Positions 56,687-64,000 of a stretch of DNA of 64,000 nucleotides are shown here, in pieces. The notes under the pieces are model-generated. The model searched no databases. It was given only the letters and a program-made list of their open reading frames with translations, and had not been told where the DNA came from. Both the position numbers and the translations under genes were made by a program. Position 1 is the stretch's first letter. The number at the start of each line of letters is the position of its first letter. The DNA lies in the IMG/VR virus record IMGVR_UViG_3300021962_000021, positions 1 to 64,000 of that record; one strand, 5' to 3'.

Positions 56687-57289
56687 ATGAAAAAATTATT
56701 TACGTTATTTACACTTTTAGTTATTGGTGTTATAACATTCGCACAAGATACCGTTAGAGTTAAAAACAATGTATTCGAAGTTCTTTATTCACAATCATTG
56801 GAACAACCATTGATGATTAAATATCATTCAACAAATAGACCTACAAAGGTTAATAGAGGTGCTATGGATTTTTACAAAGAACCAAATATCAAAACATCCG
56901 ATGCTGATGATTACAAAGCAAACATATATGATAAAGGACATGGTGCACCCGCTGCAACATTCTCTGATAATATCGAAAATCTTAAACAAACATTTTCGTA
57001 TTTGAATTGTATTCTACAAGACCAATATCTTAATAGAGGTGAGTGGAGATTGTTAGAGGAACAAGAAAGAAAGTGGGATGATACTGAAAATTTAACAGTA
57101 GTAATTAAAGTTTTATTTGATAAGCCTGTTAAAAGAATACCAACAAATGCTGCAATACCAATTGTTTTACAAAAGCATATTTATTTTGAAAACCAAAAGA
57201 AATGGAAGTGTTATGTATTTTTAAATGAAAGACCTAAATATAAGTGGGAAGAATTAGAAATGATTTGCCCACCATCTGACCATAAATAA
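56687..57289 (+). CDS. exported DNA/RNA non-specific endonuclease (NucA family)
   Basis: signal TFA|Q; YDKGHGAPAA, LNRGEW..LE. Confidence 0.88.
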   Translation: MKKLFTLFTLLVIGVITFAQDTVRVKNNVFEVLYSQSLEQPLMIKYHSTNRPTKVNRGAMDFYKEPNIKTSDADDYKANIYDKGHGAPAATFSDNIENLKQTFSYLNCILQDQYLNRGEWRLLEEQERKWDDTENLTVVIKVLFDKPVKRIPTNAAIPIVLQKHIYFENQKKWKCYVFLNERPKYKWEELEMICPPSDHK

Positions 57290-57305
57290 AACAAAAATTT
57301 AAGTA

Positions 57306-57719
57306 GTGTTTAAACCAAATCATTTACACTTATTAGTGAAGGGATATATGAGCACCCCACCAAAAGAAGAAGCTCATTTGAATGAATTTTTTAAGAAATT
57401 AGTAGAGAAAGTAAGAATGGTAGTAGTTGCCGGACCAACATCCGTTTATGTTAATGAACCGGGTAATGAAGGAATAACAGGAACGGTGACATTAGCAACA
57501 TCGCATGCTAGTATTCACGTTTGGGATGCGGAAAGACCTGCAATGTTCCAATTTGATTTATATAGTTGTTCGGAATTTACAGCAGAAGAAGTATTAGAAG
57601 AATTAGATAATTGGTTTGGATTAGAATCAGCAAATTGGATAATGTTAGATAGAAATGGTGATGATTTTGATTCTATTGTATCCGGAAAATGGGAAGGGGC
57701 TGGGGTAACCACGTCGTAA
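57306..57719 (+). CDS. pyruvoyl-dependent S-adenosylmethionine decarboxylase-like proenzyme
   Basis: HLLV, GITGTVTLATSHASIHVW, FDLYSC; GTG start. Confidence 0.75.
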   Translation: MFKPNHLHLLVKGYMSTPPKEEAHLNEFFKKLVEKVRMVVVAGPTSVYVNEPGNEGITGTVTLATSHASIHVWDAERPAMFQFDLYSCSEFTAEEVLEELDNWFGLESANWIMLDRNGDDFDSIVSGKWEGAGVTTS

Positions 57720-57739
57720 ACCCAAAAATTTTTGATAGC

Positions 57740-58399
57740 ATGAGTTATTTAGTTGCGAACATACCACCAATCGAAGTGCTCATAGATAAACGATTTCTAT
57801 ACGATTTTCAAAAAGATGAGAAAGGAAACCTATTGGGAGAAGGGGAATGGGAAAAAGGGCATTGGGTAAGTGTTAAATCAATTCCTAATCGTGCACTCTT
57901 ATTTGAAACCCACATTGATAAATTCGGCGCGGTATATGATAAACTACCTATTCATGCATTTCGTTGGAGACCTCTGGACGCAAATGATAGGGTGTTTCCT
58001 TTGGATTTTCTACAACTTTGGGATTGTTTATCATACAATATATCGGTTATCGAAAAAAGGGTTTTAAGGGGTGTTAAAACCTATACCACAATGAAAGACC
58101 ATACCGTTGTCGGTGGTGATTATCTCTTTACAATTGATACAACACATTCTGACCCAAATGAAATAGATTGTGGGTGGAGTGAAACACCAAACGAACATAA
58201 GTGTTATAATATATCGAAGTTAGAAAACGGTCAATTTTGTGCACAACCAAATAATAGAACTAAATTTTATCAACCAAGTAGAACTGCTGATATAAATGAG
58301 ATACCTTATTTTAGACATTCTACAAAGATATGGTCATGTGAAGATTACGGAAAATGGCGACCTTCGGATGAAAATTGGAACTACGATACGTCTATTTAA
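57740..58399 (+). CDS. conserved phage hypothetical protein
   Basis: YLVANIPP, KLPIHAF, LQLWDC, EHKC, AQPNNR; probable start 57740. Confidence 0.65.
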   Translation: MSYLVANIPPIEVLIDKRFLYDFQKDEKGNLLGEGEWEKGHWVSVKSIPNRALLFETHIDKFGAVYDKLPIHAFRWRPLDANDRVFPLDFLQLWDCLSYNISVIEKRVLRGVKTYTTMKDHTVVGGDYLFTIDTTHSDPNEIDCGWSETPNEHKCYNISKLENGQFCAQPNNRTKFYQPSRTADINEIPYFRHSTKIWSCEDYGKWRPSDENWNYDTSI

Positions 58400-58440
58400 A
58401 AAAACTTATATTTATATAGGTAATAATTAAAACAATTAAA

Positions 58441-58620
58441 ATGGAAGAAATATTATACAAAATAACATTTTCTGGAAATGAAACTCCTGTAGAAGGTTGC
58501 GAATCTATGACAGATGAACAAGCTACTGCATGGTTGAATGAAAATCAAGAATATTTCGAAGAACCGAATGAGTCAGGCGATACTGCAAAATATATTCGTG
58601 TTCCTTTAACGGCTGAATAA
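58441..58620 (+). CDS. small acidic hypothetical protein
   Basis: 59 aa hand-read ORF after TATTTATA (58409). Confidence 0.55.
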   Translation: MEEILYKITFSGNETPVEGCESMTDEQATAWLNENQEYFEEPNESGDTAKYIRVPLTAE

Positions 58621-58679
58621 TTTCACATCTAAATTTATTCTATTTATAATTTGTTGATAATCAATGAGTTATAAATAAA

Positions 58680-58747
58680 TTTGGCGATTTCAAAAATTCT
58701 TCGTATATTTGATATTCAAATCGGTAATACTGATTTTAGTTCTTTAA
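58680..58747 (+). promoter_or_regulatory. sigma70-type promoter plus boxA-like element upstream of tmRNA
   Basis: TTTG 58680, TATATTTG 58704-58711, AGTTCTTTAA 58738-58747. Confidence 0.75.
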
Positions 58748-58752
58748 AATAT

Positions 58753-59122
58753 GGGGATGTTTGGTATTGATTGCCATGCGAATGATAATATCACAAGTAG
58801 AGAAATGATACTATCTCTTAATATCGTATCGAAACAATAAATGACGAAAAGTCAACAATGACTTACGATGACCTTATGGCATTCGTAGGTATGGATTACG
58901 CTGTAGCAGCCTAATCCTACTCGGGTCGGAATACATATAACCTAGGAACAGAAGTATCTATAAAGGTGGAAAATTGACTGAACCCAAAATCGAGTCAAAA
59001 CATTGATTATGATAAAATGTAAAAACTCATATATTTGTCAGTTGTGAATAACTGAATAAACTTGTGAGACGTTGGTATTATGATTACTCGGTAAGACACG
59101 GGTTCGACTCCCGTCATCTCCA
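58753..59122 (+). ncRNA. ssrA: tmRNA
   Basis: GGGGATG/CATCTCC acceptor stem with G3-U, T-arm GGTTCGACTCC, tag ORF 58843-58914 ending YAVAA-stop. Confidence 0.95.
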
Positions 59123-59212
59123 CAAAAACGCTAATATGTAAAGTATTGATTGTCAATAAGGCGTTGATTATCAATGAGTTATAACTTATTGATTTTCAAT
59201 GACTTAAGAAAG

Positions 59213-59221
59213 TTATCCACA
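59213..59221 (+). promoter_or_regulatory. perfect DnaA box
   Basis: TTATCCACA; single copy, function unproven. Confidence 0.4.
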
Positions 59222-59235
59222 TTTTTTAAAAAATA

Positions 59236-59306
59236 TTTGGTAGTTTAAAAAACTTTTCGTATATTTGATATTCAAATGTGAAAAACATATTTAGTTTAGT
59301 TCTTTA
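59236..59306 (+). promoter_or_regulatory. sigma70-type promoter plus boxA-like element upstream of tRNA-fMet
   Basis: TTTG 59236, TATATTTG 59260-59267, AGTTCTTTA 59298-59306. Confidence 0.75.
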
Positions 59307-59321
59307 TTTATATTATTATAT

Positions 59322-59394
59322 CGTGGGGTAGTAGCAGCGGTAGCTCGTTAGGCTCATAACCTAAAGGTCGGTGGTTCGAATCCATCCCCCGCAA
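59322..59394 (+). tRNA. tRNA-fMet (CAT), initiator type
   Basis: C1:A72 mismatch, anticodon loop CTCATAA, canonical T arm. Confidence 0.92.
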
Positions 59395-59593
59395 CAAAGT
59401 AATTAAGGTTGAAGCCAATAGTAATAAAACCGACTATGTGAAAAAAATAAAGCCGGATACCTTAATAACTTATTTTAAAAAATATTTGGTAGTTTAAAAA
59501 ACTTTCCTTATATTTACAATGTTCAAATGATATATGACCTTATAGGCGATGAAAGATACTCGGGTAGTTGATTTTGAATAAAAAATAAATAAA

Positions 59594-59692
59594 TTTGGTA
59601 GATTAATTTTTTTTTACTATATTTATTAAACATTGGGGTTGTAAATATTCTTACTAATGTAAGTTGTAAAGATTCCCCGATTAGTTCTTTAA
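59594..59692 (+). promoter_or_regulatory. promoter, hairpin and boxA-like leader
   Basis: TTTG 59594, TATATTTA 59618, GGGG..CCCC hairpin, AGTTCTTTAA 59683-59692. Confidence 0.65.
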
Positions 59693-60562
59693 AAGATTGA
59701 AAATATTTTACATAGTAGGCTCGTCCTACATAGTAAACAACCGCCGCCTATGGTGGTTAAATAAACTACGAAAGTAGGATAAAGTGAGAATGCTTGGTTT
59801 AGTATTCTTGCGGCATCAGCAATGGTGCTTGAGTAGGCAAGTGGGATATCATCTGAGCCTTGTACGAAAGGGTAACACTATATCGGAAGGGTTTGGGTGA
59901 CTGGGGATATGTAGAATCTCTAGTTGAGTTCGGAAGAACAATAAGAATAACCCATAGAATATCAGTAAGAAGTATGTGGCTAATCACTATATATCATTGC
60001 GGTATTCAATTTCAAAGTGGTCTTAAAACCAAGCTATCCGAAAGGACGTAAGGTATGTTAATGTACAAGTGGTGTTGTTATTAACCTTTAATGTGGGACA
60101 CCAATCCCTATTAATGAAGATGACTTAAAAAATGGTGTTGACGATAACACATTGGGTAGTTTAGTATTCTCTCGTTCAAAAGATGGGGGAGCTGGTTGGC
60201 AAGCCACTACCTGAACAATCTACAAACCAAACTCAAATTTGCTTTAGGTGCAAACTATAAATCAATTTTAAGCTTAAGTGCTTGCCAGTTACGGACGAAA
60301 GGTGTCTACATAGTAATGGGTTGTCCATTGCCACGATACCACCGCAAGTGGTCTGTGATTCTTACGAAAAGTTTCTAGTTCCGCAAGAATGAATTTGCTC
60401 GGCAGGGTAGAAGAAATAGAGTAATGAGAGAGTAGTCAGTAACTCAATGAGTGGTTAGCATTACTAACCGACACTGAACGGATACATCTCAAAAGGGTGT
60501 GGATAAGAAAGGAAAAAAATAATCTTTCTAAAGGACGTTCTTCCCAAATGTGTAATCTCAGC
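59693..60562 (+). ncRNA. large structured ncRNA, GOLLD-like
   Basis: ~870 nt without credible ORF, many GNRA-capped hairpins, own promoter, ends directly before a tRNA; boundaries approximate. Confidence 0.65.
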
Positions 60563-60571
60563 ATTTTATAA

Positions 60572-60665
60572 GCGGAGTTAGTGTAATGGTCCACGCGGGT
60601 TCGCCCACGGGTTAGCACACCCCTCTTCCAGGGGGGAAGATGTAGTTCGATTCTATGGCCCCGCT
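60572..60665 (+). tRNA. tRNA-Gly (TCC) with ~20 nt D-loop insertion
   Basis: CCCCT-CTTCCAG-GGGGG anticodon arm, U73, extra UUCG hairpin in D loop. Confidence 0.8.
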
Positions 60666-60996
60666 CAATTACGATTTTCGTAGTCTTTTTCCAATGTTGT
60701 TCTGGCAGGTGAGTGGACAAGTAGGTTAGGACTTTAAATATCAAACCTAAAAGTTGTAAGACTGTCAGTTTTTGTGGGGGAAGTTTTTTACTATAAACAA
60801 ACGTAATCTAACACGATATGATTACCGAATAAAAGTAGTAGGCCGCTACATTGAGAGTATTCGTTCCCCTTATTACTCTCTTTATTAAAGGCTAAATGGT
60901 AATTTGATGAGGCTAGTATTAACCGGAGCATGACTTGACGTGGCGTATTTTGAAATCGAATTACTTTTATTTAAAAAAATATTATATATATTAGAG

Positions 60997-61155
60997 ATGA
61001 AAACTTTAACATTACATACAAATTGTTCTAACCAATCATTGAGAAATGAGTGGCAGGGGATTAGTATGTTTAATGCTATATCAAATCCGGCAACGCTTAA
61101 TTTAGGCAAGGTGGATTATATTAGCAAGATGTTAGAGGACACTGATGTAGGATAA
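60997..61155 (+). CDS. short ORF, candidate leader peptide
   Basis: 52 aa MKTLTLHTNCSNQ...; stop 27 nt before a terminator that precedes the tRNA array. Confidence 0.45.
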   Translation: MKTLTLHTNCSNQSLRNEWQGISMFNAISNPATLNLGKVDYISKMLEDTDVG

Positions 61156-61182
61156 AATGTAAAAATTTTAGAACAATATTTG

Positions 61183-61214
61183 AAACCTCTAACTCACAAA
61201 GTTAGGGGTTTTTT
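61183..61214 (+). terminator. intrinsic terminator / attenuator
   Basis: AAACCTCTAAC / GTTAGGGGTTT stem plus T run. Confidence 0.8.
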
Positions 61215-61219
61215 GTTTT

Positions 61220-61294
61220 GGGGATATAGCTCAGCGGTAGAGCGGGTCACTGTTAATGACTAGGTCATAGGTTCGAATCCTTTTATCCCCGCCA
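61220..61294 (+). tRNA. tRNA-Asn (GTT)
   Basis: cloverleaf, CCA encoded. Confidence 0.95.
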
Positions 61295-61298
61295 AATA

Positions 61299-61373
61299 GG
61301 GAAATTAGCTCAGTTGGTTTAGAGCATCTCGTTTACACCGAGAGGGTCATTGGTTCGAATCCAGTATTTCCCA
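61299..61373 (+). tRNA. tRNA-Val (TAC)
   Basis: cloverleaf, TCTCG-TTTACAC-CGAGA. Confidence 0.95.
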
Positions 61374-61378
61374 CAAAC

Positions 61379-61460
61379 TGGGGTATCGCATAGTGGCAAT
61401 TGCGGCTGACTGTAAATCAGCTCTCATTTGAGTTCGGCGGTTCGAGTCCGTCTACCCCAA
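61379..61460 (+). tRNA. tRNA-Tyr (GTA)
   Basis: cloverleaf with long variable arm. Confidence 0.95.
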
Positions 61461-61469
61461 CAAACAATA

Positions 61470-61542
61470 GGTGATGTAGCTCAGTTGGTAGAGCACCGCA
61501 CTGAAGATGCGGGTGTCAGCAGTTCAAGTCTGTTTATCACCA
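61470..61542 (+). tRNA. tRNA-Phe (GAA)
   Basis: cloverleaf, CCGCA-CTGAAGA-TGCGG. Confidence 0.95.
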
Positions 61543-61548
61543 CAAAAT

Positions 61549-61622
61549 GACTTCTTAGCTCAATTGGTTAGAGCACTACACTTTTAATGTAGGGGTTTTG
61601 AGTTCGAGTCTCAAAGGGGTCA
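61549..61622 (+). tRNA. tRNA-Lys (TTT)
   Basis: cloverleaf, CTACA-CTTTTAA-TGTAG. Confidence 0.95.
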
Positions 61623-61632
61623 CTTTGAATAA

Positions 61633-61708
61633 CGGAATATAGAGGAGTCCGGTCTATCTCGCTTCGTTTGGGACGAAGAGCACGCAGGTTCGAATCCTGC
61701 TATTCCGA
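61633..61708 (+). tRNA. tRNA-Pro (TGG)
   Basis: cloverleaf, CTTCG-TTTGGGA-CGAAG. Confidence 0.95.
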
Positions 61709-61756
61709 CAGATATGGTTCGCACTAGACAATGCGTGAAAATAGGAAGTGCAAAAT

Positions 61757-61830
61757 TGGAATATAGCTCAATTGGTTAGAGCATTCGCCTGATACGCGAA
61801 AGGTTGTAGGTTCGAGTCCCACTATTCCAA
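61757..61830 (+). tRNA. tRNA-Ile (GAT)
   Basis: cloverleaf, TTCGC-CTGATAC-GCGAA. Confidence 0.95.
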
Positions 61831-61835
61831 CATAC

Positions 61836-61906
61836 ATCCGCATGGTGAAATGGTATCATAACGGTCTCCAAAACCGCTGTTCCGAGTTCGAATCTTGGTG
61901 TGGGTG
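61836..61906 (+). tRNA. tRNA-Trp (CCA)
   Basis: cloverleaf, G73. Confidence 0.9.
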
Positions 61907-61911
61907 CAATT

Positions 61912-61984
61912 GGCTCTTTGGTGTAATGGATTAGCACATAACACTACGGATGTTAGAGTAAGGGTTCGAATCCTTTAGGAGCTA
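61912..61984 (+). tRNA. tRNA-Arg (ACG)
   Basis: cloverleaf, TAACA-CTACGGA-TGTTA. Confidence 0.93.
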
Positions 61985-61999
61985 CTAAAACAAAATGAT

Positions 62000-62335
62000 A
62001 TGAAAACATTTAAAGATTTGGAATTTAATGCACATCCAACTCATATGTTGGGTGGAGTTCAAGCTCGTATGGATTTTGATAATGGGTATGGAGTGAGTGT
62101 AGTGAAAAGTCCATATACATATGGTGGTGATAAAGGATTATACGAATTAGCAGTATTCAAAGATGGTCATATTCATTATGATAATCCAATTGCTAAAGGT
62201 GATGTTGTTGGTTATTTAAGACCAGAAGATGTAACCGATGCAATGTTAATAATTCAGAAATTTGAAAAAGAAAATGAAATAAAAAATGATCCTGATTTTA
62301 TGTATAATTGGATTAGGAATAAAAGTGGAAAATAA
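62000..62335 (+). CDS. conserved phage hypothetical protein
   Basis: FDNGYGVSVV..YGG..GLYELAV. Confidence 0.7.
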   Translation: MKTFKDLEFNAHPTHMLGGVQARMDFDNGYGVSVVKSPYTYGGDKGLYELAVFKDGHIHYDNPIAKGDVVGYLRPEDVTDAMLIIQKFEKENEIKNDPDFMYNWIRNKSGK

Positions 62336-62338
62336 GAT

Positions 62339-62602
62339 ATGGCACATTTAATACCAAATAATTCCACTCCATCGGTAACACAAATTAAACCCAAACCAAT
62401 ATTCGTAATGAGGTTTAGTAATTCAATGAGTGATGAAGATGCGAGACAAACTTGTGAAACGATATACAAATCCGATATGAATAATGAGTATCATATAATT
62501 GTAATTCGTAATGACAAAGATAGAGATGAGTTTGAATTATATAACGCAGATAAGATTGAAAGACAAGAGTGGAATGAAATAGTTAAAAAATTAAAGTTAT
62601 GA
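62339..62602 (+). CDS. hypothetical protein
   Basis: 87 aa ORF. Confidence 0.6.
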   Translation: MAHLIPNNSTPSVTQIKPKPIFVMRFSNSMSDEDARQTCETIYKSDMNNEYHIIVIRNDKDRDEFELYNADKIERQEWNEIVKKLKL

Positions 62603-63123
62603 GACGTAAGATAATATTCATAGATGTAGATGGCCCGTTGGCGTGGGGAACGTGGGGTGATGGTAGAGTTGAAATGAGTTTAGGTTCATCATCAACATTT
62701 AAAATACCATACGCTTGGGTTGAAGAAGATTGTCAGGCTCTTAAAAAGATTTTGGATGAGAGTAATGCAAAGATGGTATTAAGTTCAGATTGGAGAAAAC
62801 ATTTTAGTTTCTTACAAATGAAAAGAATATTTGAATACTACGGAATTGCAGGACACAATTTGATTGATATAACTACACATCAGGACCTATGGATGAAGTT
62901 GAGTAGACCTGCAATTGAGTGGGAGAGAGCAGCTGAAATCAAAAAGTGGGTAAAGGATAATAAAATTAGTAATTGGATTTCAATTGATGATATGCAGTTG
63001 AATAAACAATTCAAATGGATGAAAGTTCCACAATGGAGACATGTTCAGGTTGATGGTGATTTTGGAGTAGGTGGTAGATTAAGAGATAAGATTGATGAAT
63101 GTATCATCAAACTAAATAGATAA
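62599..63123 (+). CDS. HAD-domain protein (Swiss Army Knife RNA-repair-like HAD)
   Basis: FIDVDGPL, VLSSDWR, RAAEI..W, WISIDD. Confidence 0.75.
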   Translation: MRRKIIFIDVDGPLAWGTWGDGRVEMSLGSSSTFKIPYAWVEEDCQALKKILDESNAKMVLSSDWRKHFSFLQMKRIFEYYGIAGHNLIDITTHQDLWMKLSRPAIEWERAAEIKKWVKDNKISNWISIDDMQLNKQFKWMKVPQWRHVQVDGDFGVGGRLRDKIDECIIKLNR

Positions 63124-63132
63124 AATAGTTGA

Positions 63133-63205
63133 GGCGGATTGGCCGAGGGAAGTGAGGTGAAGCTCTGCAAAAGCTTTTAGGTAGGTTTGAATCCTACATC
63201 CGCCT
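63133..63205 (+). tRNA. tRNA-Cys (GCA)
   Basis: cloverleaf, U73, AAGCT-CTGCAAA-AGCTT. Confidence 0.9.
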
Positions 63206-63214
63206 CAACTATAT

Positions 63215-63283
63215 TGTGGGAAGGTTAGGTAACCCGTTTGGTCTCATAAGCCAGATATTCAGGTTCGATTCCTGGTCCCGCAA
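63215..63283 (+). tRNA. tRNA-Met/Ile2 (CAT) with shortened D arm
   Basis: intact acceptor, anticodon and T arms; 69 nt. Confidence 0.75.
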
Positions 63284-63289
63284 CAACAT

Positions 63290-63364
63290 GGTGGCCGTAG
63301 CCTAATGGTAGGGCGAAAGTTTGTGGCACTTTATGTAAGAGTTCGATTCTCTTCGGTCACACCA
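63290..63364 (+). tRNA. tRNA-His (GTG)
   Basis: G-1, cloverleaf, A73, CCA encoded. Confidence 0.93.
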
Positions 63365-63423
63365 CCCCGGGTTTTGGAGCTGGTATCTCTTTTTCCCGAT
63401 ATAAATGAAAAAACTACCAAAAA

Positions 63424-63507
63424 GGAAAGATGGGTGAGTGGTTTAAACCAGCAGTTTACTAAACTGCCGATTCAAAAGGTCCGTGAGTTCGAATCTCACT
63501 CTTTCCG
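63424..63507 (+). tRNA. tRNA-Ser (ACT)
   Basis: long variable arm, G73, GCAGT-TTACTAA-ACTGC. Confidence 0.88.
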
Positions 63508-63508
63508 C

Positions 63509-63649
63509 ATGAAAAATGATAAATTTGAAACTAACAAAAGAGTAAATCGTATTGTTAGAATAAGAAAAATTATTAGAGAAAATGGAGCTTGTTTAATATG
63601 TGTGAGAAGATGGAATGGTGGAGTGAAAAAATATAGAACAAACTGTTAA
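63509..63649 (+). CDS. small basic hypothetical protein
   Basis: 46 aa ORF MKNDKFETNKR... filling the Ser-Leu spacer. Confidence 0.35.
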   Translation: MKNDKFETNKRVNRIVRIRKIIRENGACLICVRRWNGGVKKYRTNC

Positions 63650-63652
63650 AAT

Positions 63653-63726
63653 GCCCGTATGGCGTAATTGGCAACCGCACTGGTCTTAGAAACCAGTTTG
63701 TGAAAGTTCGAGTCTTTCTACGGGTA
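63653..63726 (+). tRNA. tRNA-Leu (TAG) with short variable loop
   Basis: CTGGT-CTTAGAA-ACCAG, A73, 5 nt variable loop. Confidence 0.88.
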
Positions 63727-63755
63727 CAAAAAATAAATTATCAATATGTAATATT

Positions 63756-64000
63756 ATGGAATACAAACGGCTATATGATGGAGTAAAAATTGACATGATT
63801 GAATATGTCAGAGAGTATTTAAGTGGAAAAGAAAATGTAGAAATACTAATTGGTTGTGATTCACAAAACTTTTCCGATAAAACTATTTACGCAATCGTTG
63901 TAGCTTTGTATCATAAAGGTAAAGGAGCACATGTTCTTTATAGTAAATGGAAAACCCAAAGAGAACCAACACGTTCAGTAAGATTGTTGAGTGAAGTATG
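63756..64000 (+). CDS. YkuK-like (RNase H-fold) protein, truncated by window end
   Basis: hand-read MEYKRLYDG..EILIGCDSQ..YAIVVALY..GKGAHVLY..RLLSEV. Confidence 0.75.
   Translation, partial: MEYKRLYDGVKIDMIEYVREYLSGKENVEILIGCDSQNFSDKTIYAIVVALYHKGKGAHVLYSKWKTQREPTRSVRLLSEV

Follow-up and report, generated by a model that had tools for sequence, protein, structure and literature searches.

How the tRNA genes carried by phages are regulated is largely unknown. The question arises sharply at one locus of a 238-kb lake phage (IMG/VR record IMGVR_UViG_3300021962_000021), where a small open reading frame and a strong hairpin followed by a T-tract lie directly ahead of a run of nine tRNA genes, leaving no space for a promoter between the T-tract and the first tRNA gene. 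We asked whether this arrangement is fortuitous, whether the frame is maintained as a reading frame, and whether it could control transcription of the tRNA genes. A sequence-only reading had proposed that the frame and the terminator form a translation-sensing attenuator, with antitermination through boxA as the alternative. We analyzed the first 64 kb (hereafter, the window) of the 238,219-bp record, which is complete by CheckV's estimate, and compared the locus with related viral and metagenome loci. Our results support the attenuator as the probable explanation, although translation of the frame, the direction of the switch and the signal are all inferred from sequence.

Results

Anatomy of the locus

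The genome has about 31% G+C and all genes lie on the + strand. The region of interest lies in a block of non-coding RNA genes (Table 1). The tRNA island continues beyond the window to 24 tRNAs covering all 20 amino acids. The ORF, the hairpin and the T-tract were all confirmed, and the start of tRNA-Asn was placed by both ARAGORN and Rfam. A terminator scan of 57000-64000 identified only this one site, whereas 3.7 such sites are expected by chance, and one ORF of this size alone would not be significant either. The case therefore rests on comparison with relatives. A longer, GTG-started frame (60940) was rejected because it overlaps the structured RNA element upstream.

Table 1. Features of the locus (window coordinates unless stated otherwise)
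Feature	Position	Strand	Remarks
ORF with DNA/RNA non-specific endonuclease domain	56687-57289		PF01223, 71 bits; shortly upstream of the RNA gene block
tmRNA	58753-59123		23-residue tag ending in AVAA; conserved upstream of tRNA-Met and GOLLD in relatives
tRNA-Met	59322-59395
Promoter-like motifs	40819, 58680, 59236, 59485, 59594	+	TTTGGYR..TATATTT; ahead of tmRNA, tRNA-Met and GOLLD
Promoter-like motif upstream of GOLLD	59594-59624	+	TTTGG..N..TATATTT, Bacteroidota -33/-7 type; likely start of the transcription unit (inferred)
GOLLD RNA	59630-60564	+	5' boundary approximate; RF02032 covers the 3' domain, 60152-60564 (278.6 bits, E 2e-79)
tRNA-Gly(UCC)	60572-60668	+	hairpin insertion of about 20 nt in the D-loop
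Stretch covered by RNA contigs	60705-60931		conserved only in the window's own lineage
Structured RNA element	60898-60965	+	closing helix P1, 60898-60908 with 60955-60965
Leader ORF	60997-61155	+	52 codons plus stop; TAA at 61153-61155
Segment 1	61004-61013	+	ORF codons 3-6; anti-antiterminator
Segment 2	61128-61138	+	14-24 nt before the stop codon; anti-terminator strand
Two start-stop pairs	61141-61170		ATG directly followed by a stop, out of frame with the leader
Terminator hairpin plus T-tract	61182-61219		stem 61182-61212, 13 pairs
Segment 3	61186-61194	+	5' arm of the terminator
Segment 4	61200-61219	+	3' arm (61200-61208) plus T-tract (61209-61219)
First tRNA block	61220-61985	+	Asn, Val, Tyr, Phe, Lys, Pro, Ile, Trp, Arg
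Probable remainder of the operon	62000-63727	+	three small ORFs and five tRNAs (Cys, Met, His, Ser, Leu)
ORF with HAD_SAK_2 domain	62599-63123		PF18143, 71 bits; RNA-repair-type phosphatase domain
tRNA-Ser	63424-63508		unusual anticodon ACT; conserved in relatives' arrays
Further RNA-repair-type genes	genome 63756-64212 and 65443-67608 (locus L233, 3757-4212 and 5443-7608)		RNase H-like (PF04308), metallophosphoesterase, AAA_33 kinase, RNA ligase with an OB domain

GOLLD lies directly upstream of the structured element in 13 of 13 diverse relatives tested. The tRNA-Gly that follows GOLLD was missed by ARAGORN, which calls tRNA-Gly(tcc) once the D-loop insert is removed in silico; it aligns with the intact tRNA-Gly of two related loci, L002 and L003, which have the plain tRNA, whereas locus L091 carries the same kind of insert. 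In other lineages, only a degenerate tRNA-like remnant precedes the element.

A search of Rfam at E values up to 1 over 57000-64000 gave only GOLLD, tmRNA and tRNAs as significant matches, with nothing credible on 60669-61219. The structured element thus has no Rfam family. In an alignment of 27 distinct versions, its 11-pair closing helix P1 contains seven pairs with compensatory changes and surrounds a 46-nt core that is almost invariant. The element is single-copy in the phage genome. It could be a sensor, a ribosome-loading or pause element, or a separate small RNA.

The promoter-like motif occurs 5 times in the window against 0.2 expected. In 62 related loci, such motifs cluster 1050-1350 nt upstream of the element, and almost none lie between GOLLD and the tRNAs. 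The tRNA block thus seems to depend on polymerases that have passed GOLLD and the attenuator. A sigma-70 promoter scan was not above shuffles and was not informative for this genome. No terminator-like site or promoter motif was identified between 61220 and about 64218 in genome coordinates, near which the next motif lies, just past the window's end. The controlled operon is therefore probably 61220 to about 64200, although that this is one operon is inferred.

Conservation of the leader ORF among related loci

A megablast search against 50,697 phage records gave only a tRNA-Met match and hence no annotated relative. Among 80 loci collected through a neighboring 111-aa protein, only 3 (L002-L004) shared the tRNA context, but their alignment revealed a sharply conserved non-coding stretch just upstream of the ORF. 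Exact-pattern scans with this stretch returned 34 viral loci and 116 metagenome stretches, of which 80 were used as loci, all from lake, river or marine assemblies; the same scan of 185,579 prokaryote genomes returned nothing. Since some contigs occur in both collections, we counted distinct sequences. The comparison comprised 114 related loci with 43 distinct leader versions and 60 distinct leader peptides; two more (loci L126 and L159) escaped the search filter because one residue differs.

The order of ORF, hairpin plus T-tract and tRNA recurs in 112 of 113 informative loci, with the stop codon 62-75 nt before the first tRNA although the ORF varies from 22 to 53 codons. The exception, metagenome contig L128, has lost the ORF and segments 1 and 2 by deletion, and its element is followed directly by a weakened hairpin plus T-tract and a different tRNA. 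A hairpin of 8-13 pairs plus a T-tract is present in every locus with enough sequence. The distance from the ATG to segment 2, which is located by complementarity and therefore independently of the frame, takes ten values (65 to 137 nt), all equal to 2 mod 3. Frames +1 and +2 carry about 3.6 stops each and are never open. Conserved positions use several synonymous codons: Leu4 is encoded by TTA, TTG, CTT and CTA, Pro13 by three codons and Gly22 by four. However, conserved His-Thr, Pro, Trp-Gly and Met codons also form nested hairpins, such that part of the apparent peptide conservation may be constraint on the RNA. Profile searches with Pfam and PHROGs gave nothing credible for the peptide. 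Only 5 of 70 genes in the window have a Shine-Dalgarno-like site and start regions are A-rich. The A/T-rich context of the leader ATG, which lacks such a site, is therefore normal for this phage and, together with the promoter-like motif, hints at a Bacteroidota-like host.

Covariation of four leader segments

We then addressed whether the ORF contains sequences that could compete with the terminator. In every version longer than 26 codons, the best complement to the 5' arm of the terminator (segment 3) lies 12-25 nt before the stop codon and gives 8-9 pairs at -10 to -15 kcal/mol (shuffle p of 0.003-0.03 each). This segment 2 changes together with the arm: five arm classes each have a matching partner inside the ORF, although the encoded C-terminal peptide differs (LED, LRD, LRE, LGE, SGY and others). 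The start-stop pairs listed in Table 1 sit in a nucleotide block conserved among the versions whose peptide ends in LEDTDVG. Segment 2 pairs with the segment 3 of its own class at -12 to -13.6 kcal/mol, against -6 to -9 for unrelated classes; swapping partners between classes costs 3-6 kcal/mol, and the own partner is better in 41 of 43 versions. As an independent count, we used a plain MAFFT alignment. Despite some register errors, the 2:3 helix is 85.8% paired, with 11 double-change cells and a covariation score reached by 0 of 500 shuffles, as good as the terminator itself, which is 84.8% paired across the 43 versions.

A further segment, segment 1, is complementary to segment 2. The best complement lies at nt +5 to +18 of the ORF in 41 of 43 versions and follows the changes of segment 2, for example TGAC with GTCA against TAAC with GTTA. 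The own partner is better in 42 of 43 versions. Support for 1:2 on the MAFFT alignment was weaker, with 69% of cells paired, 9 double-change cells and 14 of 500 shuffles reaching the double-change count. In the 22-codon versions both 1:2 and 2:3 are weak (-4 and -8 kcal/mol, respectively, not significant against shuffles). For both the 2:3 helix and the terminator, departures from pairing are almost all G-U on the + strand, as expected for RNA pairing.

Folding of the leader (60992-61219) gave 1:2 plus the terminator (-57.8 kcal/mol, z = -4.85 against shuffles), whereas folding without segment 4 gave 2:3 in nearly all representatives. The 1:2, 2:3 and 3:4 pairings are mutually exclusive. In the 22-26 codon versions, segment 2 overlaps or follows the stop codon (-5 to +10), so it is inside the footprint of a terminating ribosome there as well. 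Segment 3 starts 26-39 nt after the stop in all but two versions, which have 51 nt.

Amino acid content of the leader peptide

Classical attenuators carry a run of identical regulatory codons, but the leader examined here has none. Instead, it holds 13-20 different amino acids; all 51-53 residue versions and most 39-42 residue versions contain all 20, against a random expectation of 0.005-0.05. An amino acid whose tRNA gene is in the array occurs in the leader in 97% of cases against 75% expected, whereas one whose tRNA gene is absent occurs in 64% of cases. Phylogenetically independent pairs, pooled over 14 amino acids, go the same way about 20 times and the opposite way about 3 times (sign test about 5e-4), although Val, Tyr, Phe and Lys come and go as one block and so are not independent. 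Close relatives show concordant changes for Tyr, Gly, Ala, Pro, Gln and Ser: Tyr appears in the leader where a tRNA-Tyr joins the array, and Gln and Pro vanish together with their tRNAs. However, many tRNA losses are not mirrored and one Tyr case is opposite. A test by codon box was mixed, holding for Leu-CTN and Ser-AGY but failing for Arg-CGN and Ser-TCN. AGY codons in the leader track the tRNA-Ser with anticodon ACT, occurring with 25 of 26 arrays that have it and 4 of 13 without. We treat feedback on tRNA supply as a plausible but unproven refinement.

RNA data and RNA-repair genes

We examined Logan contigs from four lake and river metatranscriptome runs, which show where RNA-derived contigs lie but not their ends, strand or level. 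Contigs at high word depth cover GOLLD (about 59663-60656) and the stretch at 60705-60931, where a 228-nt contig occurs in three lake RNA libraries at a depth comparable to that on GOLLD. This stretch, shared with loci L083 and L088, may be a stable RNA in its own right or the abundant 5' part of the leader. Some depth extends to about 61015, but there is none on 61016-61116, little on the tRNAs and almost none on the flanking coding sequence. Thus, the upstream RNAs are abundant, whereas the lack of contigs counts against the leader ORF region being an abundant stable RNA, although strain divergence may hide it. These data neither support nor contradict regulated termination. The genes encoding RNA-repair-type proteins in and just after the tRNA island look like a tRNA-repair set, which fits a phage exposed to tRNA damage, but this evidence is circumstantial.

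Discussion

The anatomy of the locus, its conservation and the covariation of the three pairings lead us to suggest that a ribosome-mediated transcription attenuator of the trp type gates the phage tRNA operon. We put the probability of this reading at about 0.72; it is inferred without direct evidence of translation, termination or read-through, and the host, and hence its degree of transcription-translation coupling, is unknown. Transcription probably starts at the promoter-like motif upstream of GOLLD and runs through GOLLD, tRNA-Gly and the structured element before entering the leader. With no ribosome on the ORF, segment 1 would pair with segment 2, the terminator would form and transcription would stop 1-10 nt before tRNA-Asn. 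A ribosome translating the start of the ORF would melt 1:2; if it lags or stalls before reaching the last eight codons, free segment 2 would pair with segment 3 as soon as the latter is made, and RNA polymerase would run into the tRNA genes, which RNase P would then cut out of the transcript. A ribosome reaching the stop codon in time would cover segment 2, allowing the terminator to form again. This direction, read-through when translation lags, is the one that the sequence-only reading proposed. The trigger it gave as an example, attack by an anticodon nuclease, is compatible with the RNA-repair genes.

Other explanations seem unlikely. The ORF could be an ordinary small phage gene, or the end of the GOLLD transcription unit, with a constitutive terminator that mainly serves as a protective 3' end or processing landmark once RNase P has cut at tRNA-Asn, the tRNAs being made by leaky read-through. 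The hairpin plus T-tract does abut the RNase P site, such that terminated and RNase-P-cut upstream RNAs would end at almost the same place; the N-terminal part of the peptide is conserved at the amino acid level, and contigs show much more RNA upstream than on the tRNAs. However, this view does not explain why segment 2 stays complementary to the terminator arm through five sequence classes at a fixed distance from the stop while the C-terminal half of the peptide is freely replaced, nor why codons 3-6 stay complementary to segment 2, and the peptide has no family. Somewhat less likely still is an RNA-only switch, in which the structured element is a ligand- or factor-binding sensor, segments 1-4 are its expression platform and the open frame is tolerated but not needed. 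The covarying helix around an invariant core resembles an aptamer, the element always precedes the leader and the leader itself is highly structured. Yet the linker between the element and segment 1 varies from about 25 to 100 nt (about 20 to 85 nt to the leader ATG), we saw no pairing that links P1 to segments 1-4, albeit without a systematic search, and frame maintenance over ten lengths with a stop tied to segment 2 is unexplained without translation. Locus L128 indicates that the element can stand alone.

Antitermination, the alternative in the sequence-only reading, is not excluded but is less likely. Several versions of segment 1 contain a 10-nt stretch that appears to equal the core of the E. 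coli rrn boxA, and the structured element, which might be a put-like RNA, lies between the promoter and the terminator. On the other hand, segment 1 varies among relatives (TAAC, TGAC, TAGC and TGAA forms) in step with segment 2, which fits pairing rather than a protein site, and lies inside the reading frame. Also, Nus-type complexes act mainly on Rho-dependent termination, and a conserved strong intrinsic terminator that is always overridden would have no purpose. That the segments are DNA sites of one phage DNA-binding protein evolving in concert is the least likely. Although all four are versions of one 8-9 bp word in alternating orientation, the prevalence of G-U departures on the + strand is a signature of RNA, and the T-tract, the A-tract and the fixed relation to the stop codon have no role in an operator model. 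We also considered nascent-peptide arrest of the TnaC/SecM type as the reason for the conserved Trp-Gly and His-Thr, but did not adopt it, because the conserved block lies at very different distances from the stop in short and long versions and those codons also form RNA helices.

Leader-peptide attenuators of the trp, his, leu, thr, ilv and pheA operons in Proteobacteria (PMC1183508) likewise have a short leader ORF, four segments with mutually exclusive pairings, a stop codon placed so that a terminating ribosome covers segment 2, and an intrinsic terminator just before the regulated genes; in them slow translation gives read-through, which is only inferred here. The locus described here differs in that the regulated genes are tRNAs rather than enzymes, that the leader is rich in different amino acids instead of carrying a tandem run of one regulatory codon, and that it lies in a phage downstream of a giant non-coding RNA. 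T-box riboswitches also couple tRNA status to the choice between terminator and anti-terminator, but they bind uncharged tRNA directly and have no ORF, and no T-box match was found. The mgtA and mgtCBR leaders of Salmonella (PMC3641672) combine a structured RNA domain with translated short ORFs whose translation decides the formation of alternative stem-loops, but with different sensors and regulated genes. GOLLD has been described next to phage tRNA genes, with possible co-transcription already suggested (10.1101/2024.12.08.627333; PMC5737381); as far as we could see, those papers describe no leader ORF, attenuator or conserved element between GOLLD and the tRNAs. In the literature that we could search, which is incomplete, we found no report of tRNA genes controlled by leader-peptide attenuation, in phages or in cells.

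A more far-reaching possibility, which remains tentative, is that the leader peptide samples the phage's own tRNA supply, carrying about one codon for nearly every tRNA isotype encoded in the array behind it and co-evolving with that gene content. A shortage of any of these tRNAs, through early infection, codon-usage mismatch or cleavage by host anticodon nucleases, would stall the ribosome and switch the array on, and a sufficient supply would switch it off. GOLLD, transcribed from the same promoter as the 5' part of this unit, would then belong to a translation-linked regulon, which would give the first concrete functional context for this RNA.

Besides bringing to light an undescribed, sharply conserved structured RNA element, our analysis has the following implications if the attenuation mechanism holds. 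The classic attenuator would have been re-used to sense overall decoding capacity rather than one amino acid, and it would offer a natural sensor of tRNA depletion, relevant to the conflict between anticodon nucleases and phage tRNAs or RNA repair. It would also tie GOLLD, a giant RNA of unknown function that forms nanocages, into a defined transcription unit whose output depends on translation, making the role of GOLLD experimentally approachable.
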